DNA of 64,000 nucleotides from Selaginella moellendorffii (GCF_000143415.4 NW_003314290.1:1664454-1728453); one strand, 5' to 3'; shown: positions 26,684-64,000, counted from the first letter of the stretch. A program made the numbers and translations. The notes: a model not told the origin generated them from the letters alone.

Positions 26684-27456
26684 CTTTTCTATGGAAAAGA
26701 GATAGATCATTTAAAATTAATGTTAATGCTGGAACAAACCATTATAGCCAATAAGATTCCGCCACGGTCTTAAAGTTCTCACTTGAAAGCTATAAGTCTT
26801 GAGGATGGTTTCATCGCTCGATCACTGTTGAATGGGTGGAACATGATTGCTAGAAGATAATCAATCCAAAGTAATCAGTCAACGACGACCAAACTTCAGT
26901 AGTGTAGCCCACTGGATTGCTGAGACTTTTATTTCCCCATCTATTCCATACCATAACCACGATGTTTTTTGCATGACATCGATTGCTCCTTTGATATGCT
27001 TCTGGATTTCCTGATCACAAGGAACTTCCGTGTGGTGGGAATGAACTTTTTAAGTACTCTCTCCCAGATACCCAAACGTGATCTTCAACCTGAAGCAAGT
27101 TTTGCGGAACGAGAAACAACGAGAAAATTGGAATGTGTGAAACAAATCTGAGACTCAGATAGGCTCCAGTGCTACTAACGCTAGAAGATCCACGGCGCCT
27201 TCGAGCATTTTCACCAGAGGCATCGTTGGTCGTTCCAAGGGGTCCTCCTGGGCACACCATAGCCCGATCGGGTTGAAGACACTCTAGCTTTGCATTCAGG
27301 CATGGGTTTTTGTGATCTTCTCGAGCAATCTACAATGAATGTCTAGCTCTCGGGAATTCTCTAGCAAAGCATCGTTTCGATTTTCGAGCATTACAGCTTC
27401 ACTGATTGATCCGCAAACATGATAGCACTTATTAAAACATAGTTAGATGTACACAC

Positions 27457-45289: not shown

Positions 45290-45610
45290 TCAGGAGAGCT
45301 TGTGGCGGTCAAGAGGATTGGTGCTGGATCGCAGCAGGGGGACAAGGTGATGTCCATCAGCAGCATCCATCACCTCAATCTCGTCAAGCTGTCGGGATTT
45401 TGCCTCCATTCATCACTCAGCTTGTTCGTCTACGAGTTCCTCCCCAAGGGCTGGATAGCTTGGATTAGATAGTTTCTCCGTGTGTGATGGTGAAAATGCT
45501 CGAGGGTGCCATGGATCTTGTTGTATTTCCTGGAGAGACCACCTTTTTCTCACTGGTAGTGAGTAGCAGTCTGAAGTGTTCCATCCCGGTCTCGGATTTG
45601 GCACGCTAGA
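45290..45610 (+). pseudogene. Internally deleted receptor-kinase relic related to the 61117-62884 kinase
   Basis: ELVAVKRIGAGSQQGDKVMSISSIHHLNLVKL..VYEF jumps to VKMLEGAMD and a ...gatttggcacgctag end matching 62740-62884. Confidence 0.8.
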
Positions 45611-55942: not shown

Positions 55943-58782
55943 ATGGATTCCTCCTCCGAGGACGACGTGCCGCTCGCGGCGCGCTTCAAGAAGGCAAATC
56001 CAGCCAAGGATTCGGACGACGAGGACGACGTCCCCCTCGCCCGGCGCATCTTTTCCGCGAGAGCGCGCAATCCCGGAGCGGAGCAGCACGCCAGCTCCTC
56101 CAAGGATGGATCGGTGGCGGCGGCGCCGGCTTCCGCCGATTCCAACGCAAGCGGGAGGAAGAGGCCCGCGCCAGCGTCCGCCAATGGCAGTTCCAAGAAA
56201 TCCAAGGTCGAGGTGAGCTCCAGCGATGAGGAGAGTGAGGAGGAGGATGACGAAGACGAGGACGAGGACGTTCCCATTGGAAAGCGTTTTGGGGGCGATA
56301 GTGCAAAGCCAGGGAAGAAGGGAGCGACGAAGGGGAAGGCTGGGAGCAAGAAACCCAGAAAGGGGAGTGTTGCTGAGCCAAAATGGACGACGCTGGAGCA
56401 CAATGGCGTGCTCTTCCCCCCGCCGTATAGCCCGCATGGAGTGAAGATGCTCTACAATGGTCGGCCAGTCGATCTTACACCAGAAGAAGAGGAGGTTTGT
56501 AGCTCTTTGTTTCGCTTTCTTCGTTTAATTGTAGCTGGTCTTGCAGATCGCGACGATGTTTGCCGTGATGAAAGACACTGACTACGCAACCAAGCCCGTC
56601 TTTGTCAAGAACTTTTGGGAGGACTGGAAGAAAGTTCTTGGTCCAAAGCACGTCATCCAGAAGTTTGAGCTGTGCGACTTCACTCCTATTTTCGACTGGC
56701 ATGCCGCGGAGAAAGAGAAGAAGAAGCAAATGAGTGCAGAGGTGTGTTCGTCCGTGGATTATGTGTTTGTCTCACTTCTTTTTGCAGGAGAAAAAGCAAC
56801 TGAAAGAGGAGAAGGCGAAAGCAGAAGAACGTTATGCATGGGTTCTGATCGATGGTGTCAAAGAGAAGGCGGGGTTACTTCTTTTCTTTCCACCCCATGG
56901 CAGTTTTCTTACTGTAACTCGTGCCAACAGGTTGGAAATTTTAGAGTGGAGCCTCCTGGCCTTTTCCGGGGCCGCGGCGAGCATCCCAAGGTACTTAAGC
57001 TTCAGTTTGTTTGTAAGCTTCACACCATTGTCGTTTAGATGGGAAAGCTGAAACGGCGCATTTTTCCTGAAGACATTGTACTCAACATTGGAAAAGAAGC
57101 ACCAGTTCCAGAGTGTCCGCTTCCTGGTCACAAGTAAGTGTGCATTACATGATTCTTATCTTGTTAGGCTAACTTTGCTTACCGCAGGTGGAAGGAAGTC
57201 AGACACGATAACACCGTTACCTGGCTTGCGTTTTGGAACGACCCGATCAATGTGAAGGAGTTTAAGTACGTGTTTTTGCATCAAAGTAGTAGTTTGAAGG
57301 GCAAGAGCGATGAGGAGAAATACGATAAGGCTAGGAAGCTTACGTCAAAAGTAAGCAGGCGTTTTCTTTTCTTTTCTAATCTTCATTTCTTGTCAGATTG
57401 ATAGCATACGGGAATCTTACACAAAGGATTTTAAAGCGAAGGATGTGGAAGCACGGCAGATTGCGGTGGCCACGTATCTTATTGATAGGCTTGCTCTGAG
57501 AGCAGGAAACGAAAAGGTGGAAAGTGTGTCATTTTCGTGCCTGTGAATTGACATTTTGATTTCAGGATGACGATGAAGCTGATACGGTTGGCTGCTGCTC
57601 GTTGAAAGTGGAGCACGTCTCTCTTTCCCCTCCGAGCTCGCTTGAGGTGCTTTGTTGAGGACTTGAGACTGTTGTTTTGTGATCTATGGTTCGCATATTT
57701 ACAGTTCGATTTTCTGGGTAAAGACTCCATCAGGTACCAAAACTCTGTGGTTGTAAACGAAGAGGTATACGACGCTATACACGACTTCAAGAAAGGTATG
57801 TTGTGACTTGTGTTGTCCTCGTTGAGATGAGCTGTTTGTTACACAGGGAAAAAGGAAGGGGTTGACCTCTTTGATAGGTTAGATACTTCTAAGCTTAATG
57901 CCCATCTGAAGAAGTACATGCAAGGTCTAACAGCGAAGGTGTTTCGAACGTATAATGCGTCATATACTTTGGAGACGCAGGTTTGCGACTTTTGCTTTGT
58001 CAAGGCCAAAATGATCTGACGCATTACTTGTTACAGTTGAAGGAGACGCTTGGTGCGACTCTTAACGAGAAAACTGCAGAATACTCCCGAGCAAATAAGG
58101 AGGTAAGAGAACGTTCTGTTTGGTTAGCACTCATGAATCTTGTTGACAGGTCGCGATTCTATGTAATCATCAACGGACAGTATCCAAGGGCCATAGTGCT
58201 CAGATGGAAAGATTGGAGGCAAAGATTTCAGAGTTAAAGGTCTGTTTTTCTTTATGGTTTGTTTGAGGCTGACGCTTTGCTATTGGCAGACATTGCGTGA
58301 GGAACTTGCAACAGACTTGGGGAAAGTTAAAAAGGGCAAACCCCCAGTCCACAGCACCGCTAAAAGGCCTCCAACCGCAGAACAGTAAGTGGATGATTTT
58401 TATGTTTCCACTTTTATGATACTGACTATTCATGTAAATACCAGGTTGGAAAAGAAGTTGGCTCAAACTGATGCAAGGATAGCGAAGATGACCTTGGATC
58501 TGTCCGTCAAAGAAGATCTCAAAACCGTAGCGCTGGGAACGTCCAAGATCAACTACATGGATCCTCGAATAACAGTCGCTTGGTGCAAGCGACACGAAAT
58601 CCCCATTGAGAAGGTGACCAGGCACTCCTTACTTTCATTTCTTTTATTTCTTTTACTGAGGCAGGAGATTTGGATCACAGGTTTTTAATAAGTCATTGCT
58701 GGCCAAATTCGCGTGGGCAATGAACGTAGAGCCCAACTTCAGATTTTGTGAGGCTGATGGTGGTGCAGACGAAGACCTTTGA
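55943..58782 (+). CDS. TOP1: DNA topoisomerase I (type IB)
   Basis: [81 protein letters not shown] (catalytic Tyr). Confidence 0.97.
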
Positions 58783-58918
58783 TTCTTTGAAATATATATC
58801 GTCTCCTCATTCCCGCTGGCTAGAAGTAGAGAGAAAAACTTGGAAGAAGGGAGTGACTCCCCTCTGCCAATATAACGTCAACACTTGCGAGACTCTATCT
58901 CGGTCTCGATGATCATGG

Positions 58919-60826
58919 TCATAGACGAGTGGATCCAGGTAGTCGGAAGCTGAGGCTTCTGGAGCTACCATCACTTGAAGGTGGTGGCAAGTCAAGAACG
59001 TCTATGTTACCTTCGAGCATATCCAGGACGTTTCTCATAGAGGGGCGGATTGCTGCCTCGGGTTGGATGCACCACAGTCCGATTTTCACGTACCTCTCGG
59101 CATCCTTGAGCTCCAAGCCACTGCTAGTGCTGGCGAAATCGTCGTCCAGGAGCTTCTCGTCAATAAGCTCGACGACGTTGCCACTGTGAAACATGCTCAG
59201 CGCGGTTTCGCCCAGGAAGCGCGGTTGTGAGGAGGATGAGGAGGAAGAGGAGGATGGAGGATGGAACTGGACGGTGCGCTTGGAGCTGACGAGCTCGAGC
59301 AGCACGATTCCAAAGCTGTAGACATCGGTCTTGTCCGTGACTTTGGTGTGGAGCCACTCGGGTGCCATGTATCCGGGAGTTCCTCGCATGACAGTCACCA
59401 CCTGGCTCTTTCCCCGCTCGGCGAGCTTGCTCAGGCCAAAGTCGGAAATTCTGGCTCGTAAGTTCTCGTCCAGGAGGATATTTTGAGGCTTGATATCCAG
59501 GTGAAGAACTTGCTCCCGGCATCCTTCGTGGAGGTATGTGAGTCCTCGAGCAACATCTAACGCGATTAAGTGTCTCTGGTTCCAGTTTAACAGCAGATTT
59601 GCTGATCCGCCACCTTTGTCATCATCGTTCTTGGTGAAGATCCACTTGTCCAGTGATCCATTGGGCATGAACTCGTAGACAAGCAATGCGGCTGGTCCCT
59701 GAATGCAAAATCCTCGAAGCTTTACCAGGTTGAAGTGGTGAATGCTGCCAATGGACATAACCTCGGCCTTGAACTGCGAGTGTCCTTTCGACGCGCCTTG
59801 GATCTCTACGTCCATCTTCTTCACAGCAACGAGGCTCCCATCCACAAGCTCTCCTTTGAAGACAGATCCAAATCCTCCAGCTCCAAGTATGAGCTCGGGA
59901 TCAAAGTTTCTAGTTGCCATCTTCAAGTCGTGATAGCTAAACTGGTGCGGAAGTATCTCATCGAGCCTCATTCCTTCGATGAGCACTTGCTTTTCCATGC
60001 GCCTCCTCCGAGATCTTCTCCACTTTCTGGTTGCAACGAAGATTACGACGCTAAGCACCACCCCGGCCACAGCGCTTGCTACCCCAGCGATCACTCCCAG
60101 ATAACTCTTTTTGCTTCGAATGAACTGTGGAAGATTACTATCAGTGACACTCCAAGTGACATTTCTCAAGATTCCAATGCCTGGATCATACCCAAGCTGC
60201 CTCCACACTTGCTCGTTCCCAGCCACAGCGTTTGGAGCACAGGGCTCCGTGAACGAATGATCGCTGAGACACCCGTCTGGGGAGTAGCATTGAGCCACCA
60301 TCCTGGCCACCGCAGTCCGTCCATTTGGAGCTAAAACTTGGATGTTTGTCGAGCACAAGCTCCGGTCTTGGCTATACCATCCAGTGGCCAGCGCTGCCAT
60401 GGGTTCCATATTCCATTGCGAGGACGTGCACGGCCTGAGAGACCCCGGATTTGAGAGGTTGAAGCTTGTGACATAGAGGACGGCATTGTTGGTCCCTTGC
60501 AAAGTTGGAGAGCAAGTGAAAGTCCTGTAAGCTAGGCCTGGGACGCAGCAATTCGGGCAGTCTGGAGCGATGGTGGCATTCAAAATGACGCTGGAGAAGG
60601 GCTTGCAAGCTTCGGAATCGCTGAGATATGGCTCGGATTGATTGCTCGATTGGTAGCAGGATGAATTGCGGAGTGAACGGTTGCCGCTGAGCATGGGCTC
60701 CGGGAAACAAAGATATCCATTCGGGCAGTCGCTTGATGAAGAACATACCTGTTGTTGGGCTTGCAAGTGGAAACTCCTGGTGCTACATAACACTATCATG
60801 AAGCACATGAGAAGCGACACCTCCAT
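58919..60826 (-). CDS. Receptor-like kinase with kiwellin (ripening-related, RlpA-like double-psi beta-barrel) ectodomain; intronless
   Basis: Signal peptide; Cys-rich CSSSSDCPNGYLC; CCVPGLAYRTFTCSP...ALATGWY...C...APNGRTAVA...C....GC..DH....PC..N.V....VW..LG...VTWS; TM (GVIAGVASAVAGVVLSVVIFVA) followed by RKWRR; intact kinase (LGAGGFG, VAVK, HLDIKPQN, DFG, GTPGYMAPE). Confidence 0.9.
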   Translation of the reverse strand: MEVSLLMCFMIVLCSTRSFHLQAQQQVCSSSSDCPNGYLCFPEPMLSGNRSLRNSSCYQSSNQSEPYLSDSEACKPFSSVILNATIAPDCPNCCVPGLAYRTFTCSPTLQGTNNAVLYVTSFNLSNPGSLRPCTSSQWNMEPMAALATGWYSQDRSLCSTNIQVLAPNGRTAVARMVAQCYSPDGCLSDHSFTEPCAPNAVAGNEQVWRQLGYDPGIGILRNVTWSVTDSNLPQFIRSKKSYLGVIAGVASAVAGVVLSVVIFVATRKWRRSRRRRMEKQVLIEGMRLDEILPHQFSYHDLKMATRNFDPELILGAGGFGSVFKGELVDGSLVAVKKMDVEIQGASKGHSQFKAEVMSIGSIHHFNLVKLRGFCIQGPAALLVYEFMPNGSLDKWIFTKNDDDKGGGSANLLLNWNQRHLIALDVARGLTYLHEGCREQVLHLDIKPQNILLDENLRARISDFGLSKLAERGKSQVVTVMRGTPGYMAPEWLHTKVTDKTDVYSFGIVLLELVSSKRTVQFHPPSSSSSSSSSQPRFLGETALSMFHSGNVVELIDEKLLDDDFASTSSGLELKDAERYVKIGLWCIQPEAAIRPSMRNVLDMLEGNIDVLDLPPPSSDGSSRSLSFRLPGSTRL

Positions 60827-61116
60827 AGTTTAGTAAATACCACTGTTCTTGGGCACCTGGAAACCACAGAAAATCACGAGATCGTGTCTCTCTTGTTGTT
60901 TCGGCCCACAGACTTAAAGTTTGGCAGCTGGCTGCAGGTATCTTTCAGTGTCATGGGCTGGCAGACGAAAAGAGGAATTCCTTCCAGGACCCGCAATGCT
61001 TTAACAAGCAAAAGCTTCGATCTTGACAAGTCTAGCTCCGCATGAGACCGCAAAAGACTTCGACTTTTTCTAGAGCTTTAAACCAGTTTACCCGCGAGAG
61101 GTTTGCAATTCCAGCC

Positions 61117-62884
61117 ATGGATCATCGCAGCACTTTCTTCGCGCTCGCGATGATCTCACTCGCCAGCGCCACCGCGCAGCATTTCTCCTCCTCTTGCGGC
61201 GCCAGATGCGACGATTGTTCTGGCGGTCTCGTTTGCAATCCTGTTAGCAAGACCTGCGATGGTGATCCAGGAGCTAACACCCTTTCCTGCCCAATTCCCG
61301 GCTGCGAGCCCGCGCAGACCTTCGTCTACTCGAATGCCACCGCCCTCAATCCCGAGTACTGCGTCGGCAACTACACCTATCAGCTCTTCAATTGCTCGCC
61401 TAAAGAGCAGTCTCTCAACTTCGCGGCTTTATACTACATCGAGCTGGAGGGGCTTCCCACGGCATGCAATCGGTCCACGCCCTACAAGAACTCGGAGCTC
61501 CTGGCAAATATGGCCACCGGATGGTTTGCCAGTGGATCCTCGTGCTTCAAAGAGATTGCAATCACGGCAGAGAATGGATGAGCGTCACGGCGACGGTGGC
61601 GGACATTTGTGCATCGACGATGGGGTGTAGCCCAGCGACTGGATACTACGAGCCGTGCACGCCCAGATCGCTGAGAGGGACGAGAGGTGTGTGGAAAGCG
61701 ACGTATTTTGATAATGTGTTGCAAGTCACTTGGAAGTGGATTCGAAAAAACGCACTCTTTTCATTGCACTGGTTTCTAGTGGAGCACTCGTTGCCTTGCG
61801 GCGCTCTTAAGGATTTTCTGGTGGAAGGTCGTGAGACTGTCCAATGCCGCCAAGAAGAAGCTCCATCTGGGGGATCGCACGGATGCCCCGCGGCAAATCA
61901 GGTACCAAGAGCTGTATCGAGCGACCAAGGGATTCCAGAGCAAGTGGGAGAGGGAGGGCTTGGGACTGTGTTCAAGGGGACGCTGCCCAGCGGAGAGATT
62001 GTAGCGGTCAAGAGGATTGGCGGTGGATCGCGGCAGGAGGACAAGCAATTTAAGGCGGAGGTGATGTCGATTGGCAGCATCCATCACCTCAATCTCGTCA
62101 AGCTGGATTTTGCCTGCATTCTCCCCACAACTTACTCGTCTACAAGTTCCTCGCCAATAGCTCGCTGGATAGATGGGATTTTGCCAAGGACAAGTACCTG
62201 CCCTGGGCAACCAGGCTTTCCATCGCGCTCGACGTCGCTTGAGGGCTTGCGTATCTCCACGATGGATGCCGCGAGAAGGTACTCCGTCTAGACATCAAGC
62301 CACAGAACATCCTCCTGGACGAGAAGATGAATGCCAAAATTGCCGACTTTGGATTCTCAAAGTTCATTGACAAGGACAAAACGCATGTCGTGACAGTCAT
62401 GCGGGGCACGGTGGGATACATGGCTCCCGAGTGGCTCCACTCTCGTGTCACGGACAAGACGGAAGTCTATAGCTTTGGAATCGTCCTCCTGGAGCTTGTT
62501 TGTAGCATAAAGGCCGTGGAGTGTTCCTTGTACTCGGACTCGCAGATGGACGTTGTGTTCCTCACCCAGACCGCTTTTAACAAGCTCCACAGTGGAAACG
62601 CCAAGGACTTGGTGGACGATCGGCTGCTCAAAGCCGAGGACGGTGGTGGTTTTTTCTTGAGTGGCTTTGAGAACATCCTCCTGATCGGGTTATGGTGTAC
62701 GCAGGAGGATCCCTTGCGGCGACCAACGATGTCTGTGGTGGTGAAGATGCTCGAGGGTGCCATGGATGTGTTGGCGCTCCCTCAGCTGGAGAGACCCGCT
62801 GCACAGGATTCATCGCTCTTGGTGAGCAGCAGCGAGAGCTCGGGAGTGCAGATCTCCATCTCGGTTTTGGACTTGGCTCGCTAA
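61117..62884 (+). pseudogene. Kissper-kiwellin receptor-like kinase, disrupted
   Basis: Signal peptide, kissper-like SSCGARCDDCSGGLVCNPVSKTCDGDPGANTLSC, kiwellin body, TM and kinase. Frameshifts near 61578, 61745, 61798, 61938 and 62105; in-frame TGA at 62240-62242; HLD changed to RLD. Confidence 0.82.
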
Positions 62885-63498: not shown

Positions 63499-64000
63499 AT
63501 GGCTAAAAATCATCGATCTTCCGCTTCTCTTGTGCTCTTTCTCTCTTGCATGGCTCTGGGATTCTCAGTGGAGGCAGCCAGAGAGAGTTTCACGTACTAC
63601 TGGACTCCAGAGGAGAGTGATCTATGCGCCAACGAGGCCTCAAACACAGAAATCAAGGATTGCAATGACAACACGATAGCTTCCGTCTGTGGCAGTTTCA
63701 GTTCAAAAATCCATGAGGAGGGTGCTGGAAAGTTGAAGGACGGGCACTACGTGAATTGTCAAGAGAATTGCAACTGCTACTCCGTGACTGATGGTCCCAA
63801 GGGCAGCCGAGATAACGATTTGCATCTTTACGTGTCTATCGCGGTTCCAGATGAAGTGAAGTATCCCTTTGGATCAAAGCTCCAGATAGATCTGCTCCAA
63901 AACTTAGCGCTTCCCAACGGCAGGCAACACAATGGATGTGTTCGGGTGGATGACACGTGTTATGGATGCAACATGGACTTCTACGTGGGATCTGAGAGTA
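63499..64000 (+). CDS. Secreted 3D-domain (MltA-like double-psi beta-barrel) protein; 3' end beyond the window
   Basis: Uninterrupted 167-codon ORF: MAKNHRSSASLVLFLSCMALGFSVEA|ARESFTYYWTPEESD...EEGAGKLKDGHYVNC...GSRDNDLHLYVSIAV...YPFGSKLQIDLLQNLALPNGRQHNGCVRVDDTCYGCNMDFYVG. Confidence 0.75.
   Translation, partial: MAKNHRSSASLVLFLSCMALGFSVEAARESFTYYWTPEESDLCANEASNTEIKDCNDNTIASVCGSFSSKIHEEGAGKLKDGHYVNCQENCNCYSVTDGPKGSRDNDLHLYVSIAVPDEVKYPFGSKLQIDLLQNLALPNGRQHNGCVRVDDTCYGCNMDFYVGSES

Follow-up and report, generated by a model that had tools for sequence, protein, structure and literature searches.

The window analysed here is a 64,000-nucleotide stretch of the Selaginella moellendorffii genome (GCF_000143415.4, NW_003314290.1:1664454-1728453). 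It carries at 58919..60826, on the minus strand, the whole coding sequence of an intronless gene for a receptor kinase with a kiwellin ectodomain, which we call the A-type gene. The open reading frame begins with an ATG and runs uninterrupted through 635 codons to a stop, as an earlier reading of this DNA from its letters alone (the sequence-only reading) had claimed, and the identical protein is the product of a gene called at about 1.72 Mb on GL377594.1 in S. moellendorffii assembly GCA_000143415.2; Pfam matches agree with this assignment. The gene is flanked by a topoisomerase I gene on one side and by a divergently oriented relative (the B-type, below) on the other. That it is one half of a head-to-head pair with a dead partner, and a member of a multi-copy family, had both been missed by the sequence-only reading.

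The 635-amino acid protein consists, in order, of a signal-peptide-like N-terminus, a Cys-rich kissper-like stretch, the kiwellin domain, one transmembrane helix and a complete non-RD kinase, all encoded on the minus strand. The N-terminal 24 amino acids (AAs 1–24, 60755..60826) form a putative signal peptide by their hydrophobicity and context; the hydrophobic core spans AAs 3–21 and the cleavage site is an inferred one. The Cys-rich stretch (AAs 25–63, 60638..60754) contains C28, C34, C40 and C57 and is followed by the kiwellin, or double-psi beta-barrel (DPBB), domain (AAs 64–226, 60149..60637). Six N-x-S/T sequons lie on the ectodomain side. The single transmembrane helix (about AAs 243–266, 60029..60100) reaches a mean Kyte-Doolittle hydropathy of 2.35 over 19 residues, and a basic stop-transfer stretch, RKWRRSRRRR, comes directly after it. 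The protein kinase domain (AAs 308–610, 58997..59905) has all the catalytic motifs and carries a poly-Ser insert at about AAs 524–532. Hydropathy, Pfam and motif comparison thus agree with the membrane helix and complete HLD kinase proposed earlier, and the kiwellin domain lies almost exactly where it had been placed (about 60140–60620).

Kiwellins are normally free, secreted plant defence proteins. The A-type ectodomain matches the Pfam family KWL1 (PF24300) over AAs 64–226 at 81.2 bits, where the family cutoff is 27 (E 1e-22, profile positions 36–200 of 202), and its significant matches among PDB sequences are kiwellins only: maize KWL1-b (6ti2, E 3e-23), maize KWL1 (6fpg, E 7e-23) and kiwifruit kiwellin (4x9u and 4pmk, E 1e-19 to 1e-18). 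An AlphaFold2 model of AAs 22–240, built from 64 aligned sequences, has a mean pLDDT of 81.6 and a pTM of 0.79, and the nine best Foldseek matches of this model in the PDB are all kiwellin chains. The match to 6fpg has E 3e-14, a TM score by target of 0.85 and an rmsd of 2.6 Å over 155 columns, and that to 4pmk has a TM score of 0.88; with such values the ectodomain does superimpose on solved kiwellins, and the fold assigned by the sequence-only reading has held. The next structural neighbours (expansins of bacteria and fungi, loosenin and cerato-platanin) are far more distant, with E of about 1e-4 and TM of about 0.4. The fused kiwellin thus has the domain and the fold of the free kiwellins (maize KWL1 and KWL1-b, and the kiwifruit kiwellin Act d 5) and retains their conserved Cys, Gly and Trp columns. 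On the other hand, free kiwellins are small, soluble, secreted proteins, whereas this one is membrane-anchored and kinase-fused, its transmembrane helix and kinase lying downstream in the same open reading frame.

In front of the kiwellin domain the sequence-only reading had noted a "small Cys knot". The Cys-rich stretch is real, but it corresponds to the kissper region of the kissper-kiwellins, which had been overlooked. AAs 25–63 align by tblastn with the kissper region of a B-type paralog, and the B-type ectodomain in turn aligns with full-length kiwifruit kiwellin, kissper included (4pmk residues 2–187, E 1e-21); this makes a degenerate kissper module the best reading of the A-type stretch. 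The Cys-rich N-terminal module of the free kiwellins is thus clear in the B type and degenerate in the A gene.

The kinase domain gives a Pfam Pkinase match over AAs 313–529 (E 4e-42). Its motifs include GAGGFG at 315, VAVK at 333–336 (with the lysine K336), the glutamate of FKAE, HLDIKPQN at 442 (with N449), DFG at 462, APE at 488 and RPSM at 594 (with R594), by which the enzyme should be catalytically complete. The nearest named homologues, by their NCBI names, are SD2-5, At5g20050 and At2g19130-like kinases, and in a maximum-likelihood tree the kinases of the Selaginella kiwellin receptors form one clade (support 92/89) adjoining a Selaginella At2g19130-like G-lectin-type receptor kinase. 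The SD-2b affinity expected earlier was thus recovered, both in the tree and in the nearest named matches (SD2-5/At5g20050-type), with LRK10L-type sequences also falling inside the broad HLD clade. The HLDIKPQN non-RD catalytic loop is common to the Selaginella A kinase and the SD-2b/SD2-5/At5g20050-type receptor kinases; HLD, or rarely HCD or HFD, is found in all of the 30-odd aligned SD-2b/LRK10L-type kinases (H442-L-D444 in the A protein), and HRD in the RD outgroups. Non-RD status is therefore inherited and is no specific signature of a kiwellin receptor kinase: the motif itself was correctly seen, but as a pointer to a pattern-recognition role it loses its force, being common to the whole clade. 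G-type lectin receptor kinases have a B-lectin/S-locus/PAN ectodomain, whereas no B-lectin, S-locus or PAN match was found in the A protein with Pfam at E up to 1, so the RefSeq names of its paralogs ("G-type lectin S-receptor-like...") are misleading.

The B-type relative begins 290 bp upstream of the A start codon on the opposite strand; the two start codons diverge, and the 290 bp that separate them (60827..61116, from the coordinates of the open reading frame and of the partner) are presumed to be a shared bidirectional promoter. The partner itself (61117..62884, plus strand) is a pseudogene of a B-type kissper-kiwellin receptor kinase, with homology spread over frames 1, 3 and 2. In comparison to an intact paralog it has five frameshifting indels (-1 at 61576, -10 at 61738, +2 at 61798, -1 at 61944 and -4 at 62104) and, as a sixth lesion, a CGA to TGA stop at 62240. 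Assembly error was considered and rejected for the lesions at 61798 and 62104, both of which are spanned by exactly matching contigs from independent sequencing runs; the B pseudogene is real.

The head-to-head A/B arrangement was confirmed at three loci besides that in the window. On GL377575 the A gene is an intact, intronless open reading frame of 646 amino acids (its RefSeq model, P0003, is mis-spliced) and the B gene is P0016 (612 AAs); on GL377634 they are P0007 and an open reading frame of 589 amino acids (model P0025); and on GL377719 they are P0002, truncated after AA 561, and the intact P0332 (598 AAs). A spacing of about 290–390 bp is found at two other loci as well. The RefSeq models P0002, P0003 and P0004 might be taken to describe defective genes, a view we reject since the models skip kinase segments and the genes do not; the P0003 locus holds the intact 646-amino acid frame and the P0002 locus is colinear up to AA 561. 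GL377719 is an approximately 91–93% identical segmental duplicate of the window locus that includes the neighbouring gene for a secreted 205-amino acid protein (in which no Pfam match was found). It is not the other haplotype of the window locus, given this limited identity, the inversion of the neighbouring gene and the apparent existence of an allelic scaffold for GL377719 itself, its B protein being recorded in identical form on a second, 1.16-Mb contig. About 110 coding sites tell the two loci apart. Homology of its A gene ends after AA 561, without kinase subdomain XI, and its B gene is intact, so that the two loci are in mirror-image states, with an intact A and a dead B in the window and a truncated A and an intact B on GL377719.

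In the kinase tree the A clade has support of 100/99, the B clade 99/95 and A plus B 92/89, and in the kiwellin tree the A and B kiwellin domains lie together in one Selaginella clade (99). The A copies branch in the same order as the B copies do, which indicates that the pairs were copied as units. The simplest history is a single fusion followed by an inverted duplication, after which the pair was multiplied as a whole.

In comparison to its recent duplicate, the GL377719 A gene, the A gene in the window is gap-free over 557 aligned residues and has an overall dN/dS of 0.40 (p 6.5e-6); against the GL377575 A gene, the kiwellin domain has a ratio of 0.45 (Fisher p 0.0035) and the kinase one of 0.14. 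The ectodomain thus changes faster than the kinase, with no overall excess of amino acid change. There are no disabling lesions in the 1905 bases of the A gene and six in its equally old B neighbour; at the neighbour's rate of decay about 6.5 would be expected in A, and the probability of finding none is about 0.0016. The A gene has been kept by purifying selection.

Expression was judged from Logan contigs of four runs whose RNA status is a guess (it fits their small size and, in two of them, the lack of intergenic coverage), and such contigs drop minor variants. A 2010-nucleotide contig covers 59144–60844 without gaps at about 95% identity, from the kinase to the 5' end, and continues into QLRGDVKPFG, the C-terminus of P0002, so its source is the GL377719 paralog. 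It shows, for that paralog, that ectodomain, transmembrane helix and kinase lie on one unspliced transcript in this Selaginella family. In all four probable RNA runs the contigs listed over the A coding sequence carry the paralog's letters and its divergent 3' end; in three of the four, no contig other than that of the paralog is listed for the greater part of the coding region, and the majority of the differing sites listed show the paralog letter only. Such long contigs of about 95% identity, with the letters and C-terminus of P0002, were therefore rejected as evidence for expression of the window gene. Transcripts spanning ectodomain and kinase, which the sequence-only reading had made a check on its claim, thus exist for the closest paralog, but for the window locus the contigs listed over the coding region carry the paralog's letters. 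Because minor variants are dropped from these contigs, the absence of the window's letters is no proof of silence. Exactly matching pieces at 58679–58901 may stem from the adjacent topoisomerase I gene, as part of its 3' UTR.

Kiwellin-kinase fusions are not confined to Selaginella. Of 180 kiwellin-like clusters drawn from 1.84 billion representatives, the best 150 contain no kinase fusions but those of Selaginella and of one angiosperm group. A region-restricted search with a Cuscuta protein recovered a single coherent group among angiosperms, made up of Cuscuta campestris, C. australis and transcript contigs; it also matched a Prunus gene model that looks like merged neighbouring genes. The saguaro (Carnegiea gigantea) protein Cgig2_031885 shares 92% identity with one of these transcript-derived proteins over its kiwellin, its transmembrane segment and parts of its kinase, so this angiosperm group takes in cacti. 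A word-indexed search with the ectodomain only, at receptor-kinase length, returned S. moellendorffii paralogs only, and it missed P0007, P0016 and P0025 and hence is uninformative on other lycophytes. The cactus/Cuscuta kinase nests within an angiosperm SD2-5 clade (100/100), the kiwellin of these proteins nests among angiosperm kiwellins, and a single clade of all kiwellin receptor kinases is rejected (AU p 0.0002). Both trees and this test lead us to conclude that the fusion arose at least twice, the cactus/Cuscuta event being, by these phylogenies, independent of the Selaginella one. The cactus/Cuscuta proteins (Cgig2_031885 in part, VFQ80130.1 and RAL37368.1) have the same order of kiwellin, transmembrane segment and HLD kinase as those of Selaginella and, like them, have lost the second of two conserved Asp residues (below); unlike the window A protein, which has lost the first Asp and has a degenerate kissper, they keep the first and have no kissper-like module.

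These two Asp residues belong to the barrel motifs VVDEC and NIVDAS of canonical kiwellins, which the sequence-only reading found replaced in the window gene by MVAQC and NAVAGN. A 64-row kiwellin alignment with 54 comparison rows confirms both replacements: A178 stands where 48 of the 54 other kiwellins have the first Asp, and A202 where 41 of the 54 have the second. Loss of the first is limited to a subclade of the window A protein, P0002 (the GL377719 A) and P0003 (the GL377575 A); P0007 (the GL377634 A), the angiosperm fusions and the B types, P0016 and P0025 among them, have kept it. None of the ten fused kiwellins examined retains the second, having A, G or S instead, and in the saguaro the free kiwellin, which is merged with the fused one in the gene model, keeps both residues while the fused one is without the second. 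This alignment suggests that loss of the second Asp may track the fusion, a correlation that with two independent origins only is not statistically secure. In the kiwellin papers searched, nothing is stated on the role of the two residues; that the fused kiwellin is a "binding-only module", as was proposed, is a reading that their replacement may favour.

No searchable paper was found to describe a kiwellin joined to a receptor kinase. The 2022 survey of the kiwellin family lists Selaginella among the kiwellin-bearing species and reports kiwellin duplications as the sole fusions, and the word "kinase" is absent from its text and from the supplements examined (PMC9813671). Two partial JGI models, SELMODRAFT_16503 and _136958, are exact fragments of the Selaginella receptors that contain the kiwellin part only, and a third, _17512, contains the kinase part only; the old models thus split the receptors in two, which is probably why the survey has no mention of the kinase. 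All of the Selaginella kiwellin-like entries that we traced are fragments of kiwellin receptor kinases, and none is a free kiwellin. Neither kiwellin nor barwin is mentioned in a 2024 receptor kinase review or in a 350-genome survey of surface receptors. The earlier suspicion that kiwellin stands outside the described ectodomain classes is therefore upheld in the searchable papers, and the kiwellin-ectodomain receptor kinase is a real architecture that those papers do not describe. The closest precedent in design is PR5K, the thaumatin-like receptor kinase of Arabidopsis, with an ectodomain similar to soluble defence proteins of the PR5 type (PMC6822995, PMC10868138). As in the Selaginella A protein, an ectodomain like a soluble defence protein is set on a receptor kinase; PR5K differs in having a thaumatin fold rather than a DPBB kiwellin, a kinase of another clade and a home in another plant lineage. 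We know of no report of PR5K genes in head-to-head pairs.

Our best explanation of these findings, which we hold as a whole with only somewhat more belief than doubt, is the following. A secreted kissper-kiwellin would have been fused once, in a Selaginella ancestor, to the kinase of an SD-2b-type non-RD receptor kinase; an inverted tandem duplication would then have produced the divergent head-to-head A/B pair, which apparently spread as one block to four loci or more, leaving in the window an intact A gene under purifying selection beside a decayed B. The A product, a member of a family specific to Selaginella, would be a receptor kinase that crosses the plasma membrane once, and its kiwellin barrel would bind a ligand outside the cell, most probably a protein secreted by a microbe. 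The model for such binding is the free maize kiwellin KWL1, which binds and inhibits the Ustilago effector Cmu1 (PMC9813671). Ligand binding would draw kinases together and so start signalling, possibly A with B, the latter supplied from another locus; the architecture, the fold, the family structure, the selection and the repeated origin of the fusion are observed, whereas the ligand, the immune role and any cooperation of A with B are inferred. Ustilago does not infect Selaginella, and the comparison to Cmu1 is therefore an analogy only. Against the explanation we count the dead local B partner, the paralog's origin of the listed coding-region contigs and the clade-wide distribution of the non-RD motif.

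The ligand might instead be a glycan. Glycans are bound by other DPBB proteins, namely expansin-like and barwin-like ones and cerato-platanins, and on structural grounds the modelled barrel could have a glycan ligand as readily as a protein one. The receptor would then be a sensor of the cell wall, binding fragments of plant or fungal wall polysaccharides; what it reports would be chitin/glucan or damage to the wall, and not a protein of a pathogen. The structural neighbours after the kiwellins (bacterial/fungal expansins, loosenin and cerato-platanin) agree with this, as does the moderate purifying selection on the ectodomain (dN/dS about 0.45–0.5), which has no arms-race signature, and the Asp replacements would fit binding without catalysis. 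However, the solved kiwellin complexes are only with a protein effector (6fpg, 6ti2), the similarity to expansins is far weaker than that to kiwellins, and we know of no kiwellin that binds glycans; we regard a glycan sensor as rather unlikely.

Paired NLRs such as RGA4/RGA5 and RRS1/RPS4 are divergently transcribed pairs with integrated domains, and the A/B pairs resemble them in being divergent pairs duplicated as units in which a domain is borrowed from a defence-related protein; paired NLRs are intracellular, whereas A and B are, by their predicted topology, surface kinases and both partners have the borrowed domain. An "integrated decoy" role in immunity is a plausible hypothesis. Since the known kiwellins act as effector inhibitors rather than effector targets, "bait" suits the case better than "decoy". 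In one form of the idea A and B would be an obligate heteromeric surface pair that offers a kiwellin bait to secreted effectors, and reciprocal decay would have left its halves at different loci, A in the window and B on GL377719; we think this quite unlikely. In the strict decoy form, the ectodomain would mimic a free kiwellin that effectors attack, binding would trigger the kinase, and A and B would be sensor and helper as in paired NLRs. The head-to-head pairing conserved at several loci, the lack in fused kiwellins of Asp residues conserved in the free ones, and the double origin of the fusion are all in accord with this. But A and B both have a kiwellin and a complete kinase, with no obvious asymmetry of sensor and helper, there is no free kiwellin to mimic among the Selaginella entries traced, and we know of no effector for a Selaginella kiwellin receptor; the strict form is very unlikely. 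It is likewise very improbable that the window gene is a silent, recently orphaned copy on its way to becoming a pseudogene, its frame open for want of time rather than through function, since the pseudogene partner, the coding-region contigs that match the paralog and the match of the protein on one genomic contig and no transcript contigs are outweighed by the contrast with the six lesions of a same-age neighbour and by the constraint seen against the duplicate, and the dropping of minor variants from Logan contigs deprives the missing transcripts of weight as evidence of silence.

Two independent origins of the fusion, together with the conserved pairing, make function likelier than accident. 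If A and B were indeed an obligate bait pair, they would be an extracellular counterpart of the paired NLRs with integrated domains, and the recurrence of the fusion in cacti and Cuscuta would mark a repeatedly favoured design. Receptor kinases are classed by their ectodomains, and kiwellin is absent from the described classes; if the kiwellin ectodomain binds microbial proteins, as our preferred explanation has it, this family would be a direct surface sensor of effectors in an early-diverging vascular plant and would provide a ready scaffold on which kiwellin recognition could be tested.

Our analysis of the B-type gene that is paired head to head with the window's intact A-type kiwellin receptor kinase gene shows it to be a pseudogene (window 61117-62884, + strand) whose reading frame is broken by five frameshifts and a single nonsense codon. 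It is matched exactly by contigs of probable RNA runs, and its transcription may be ongoing, driven from the shared 290-bp spacer. The A/B pair of the duplicate locus on GL377719.1 (L005 5001-6764 and 2055-3851) is in the reverse state; there the B copy is intact and the A copy is cut off after amino acid 561, without kinase subdomain XI, and is transcribed despite this truncation. These opposite states may reflect reciprocal decay following duplication of the pair. A gene for a small secreted Cys-rich protein accompanies the pair in both duplicated segments (window 63499-64000 and L005 1064-1681; 89% DNA identity), and the 205-amino acid product of the GL377719.1 copy has no Pfam match at E-values up to 10. 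Elsewhere in the window, short isolated fragments at 45290-45514 (+) and 27164-27268 (-) show 51-72% identity to the SD-2b-type kinase across 36-80 amino acids and are apparently remnants of additional copies.

The RefSeq models of three paralogs (P0002, P0003 and P0004) contain spurious introns that skip kinase segments; each bears the name of a G-type or L-type lectin receptor kinase, although none has a lectin domain. Other kiwellin receptor kinase pairs lie beside defence-flavoured genes (L003 on GL377634.1, 1-3681; L002 on GL377575.1, 2744-3460 and 7945-9086): one such locus adjoins an RBOH-type NADPH oxidase gene, and at another the neighbours are genes for a basic secretory protein (BSP) and for a class III peroxidase. 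This proximity could be coincidence.

Among angiosperms, kiwellin receptor kinases are present in the cactus Carnegiea gigantea and in the parasitic genus Cuscuta (C. campestris and C. australis). The saguaro model Cgig2_031885 (P0121) joins the receptor kinase and an adjacent free kiwellin gene into one. These lineages are distant and the distribution is patchy, which could be due to many losses or to plant-to-plant gene transfer into Cuscuta. The 280-amino acid protein P0125 of the zygnematophyte alga Closterium sp. NIES-65 is kiwellin-like (E about 1e-26 against the window A-type ectodomain), so the kiwellin domain may be older than the land plants.
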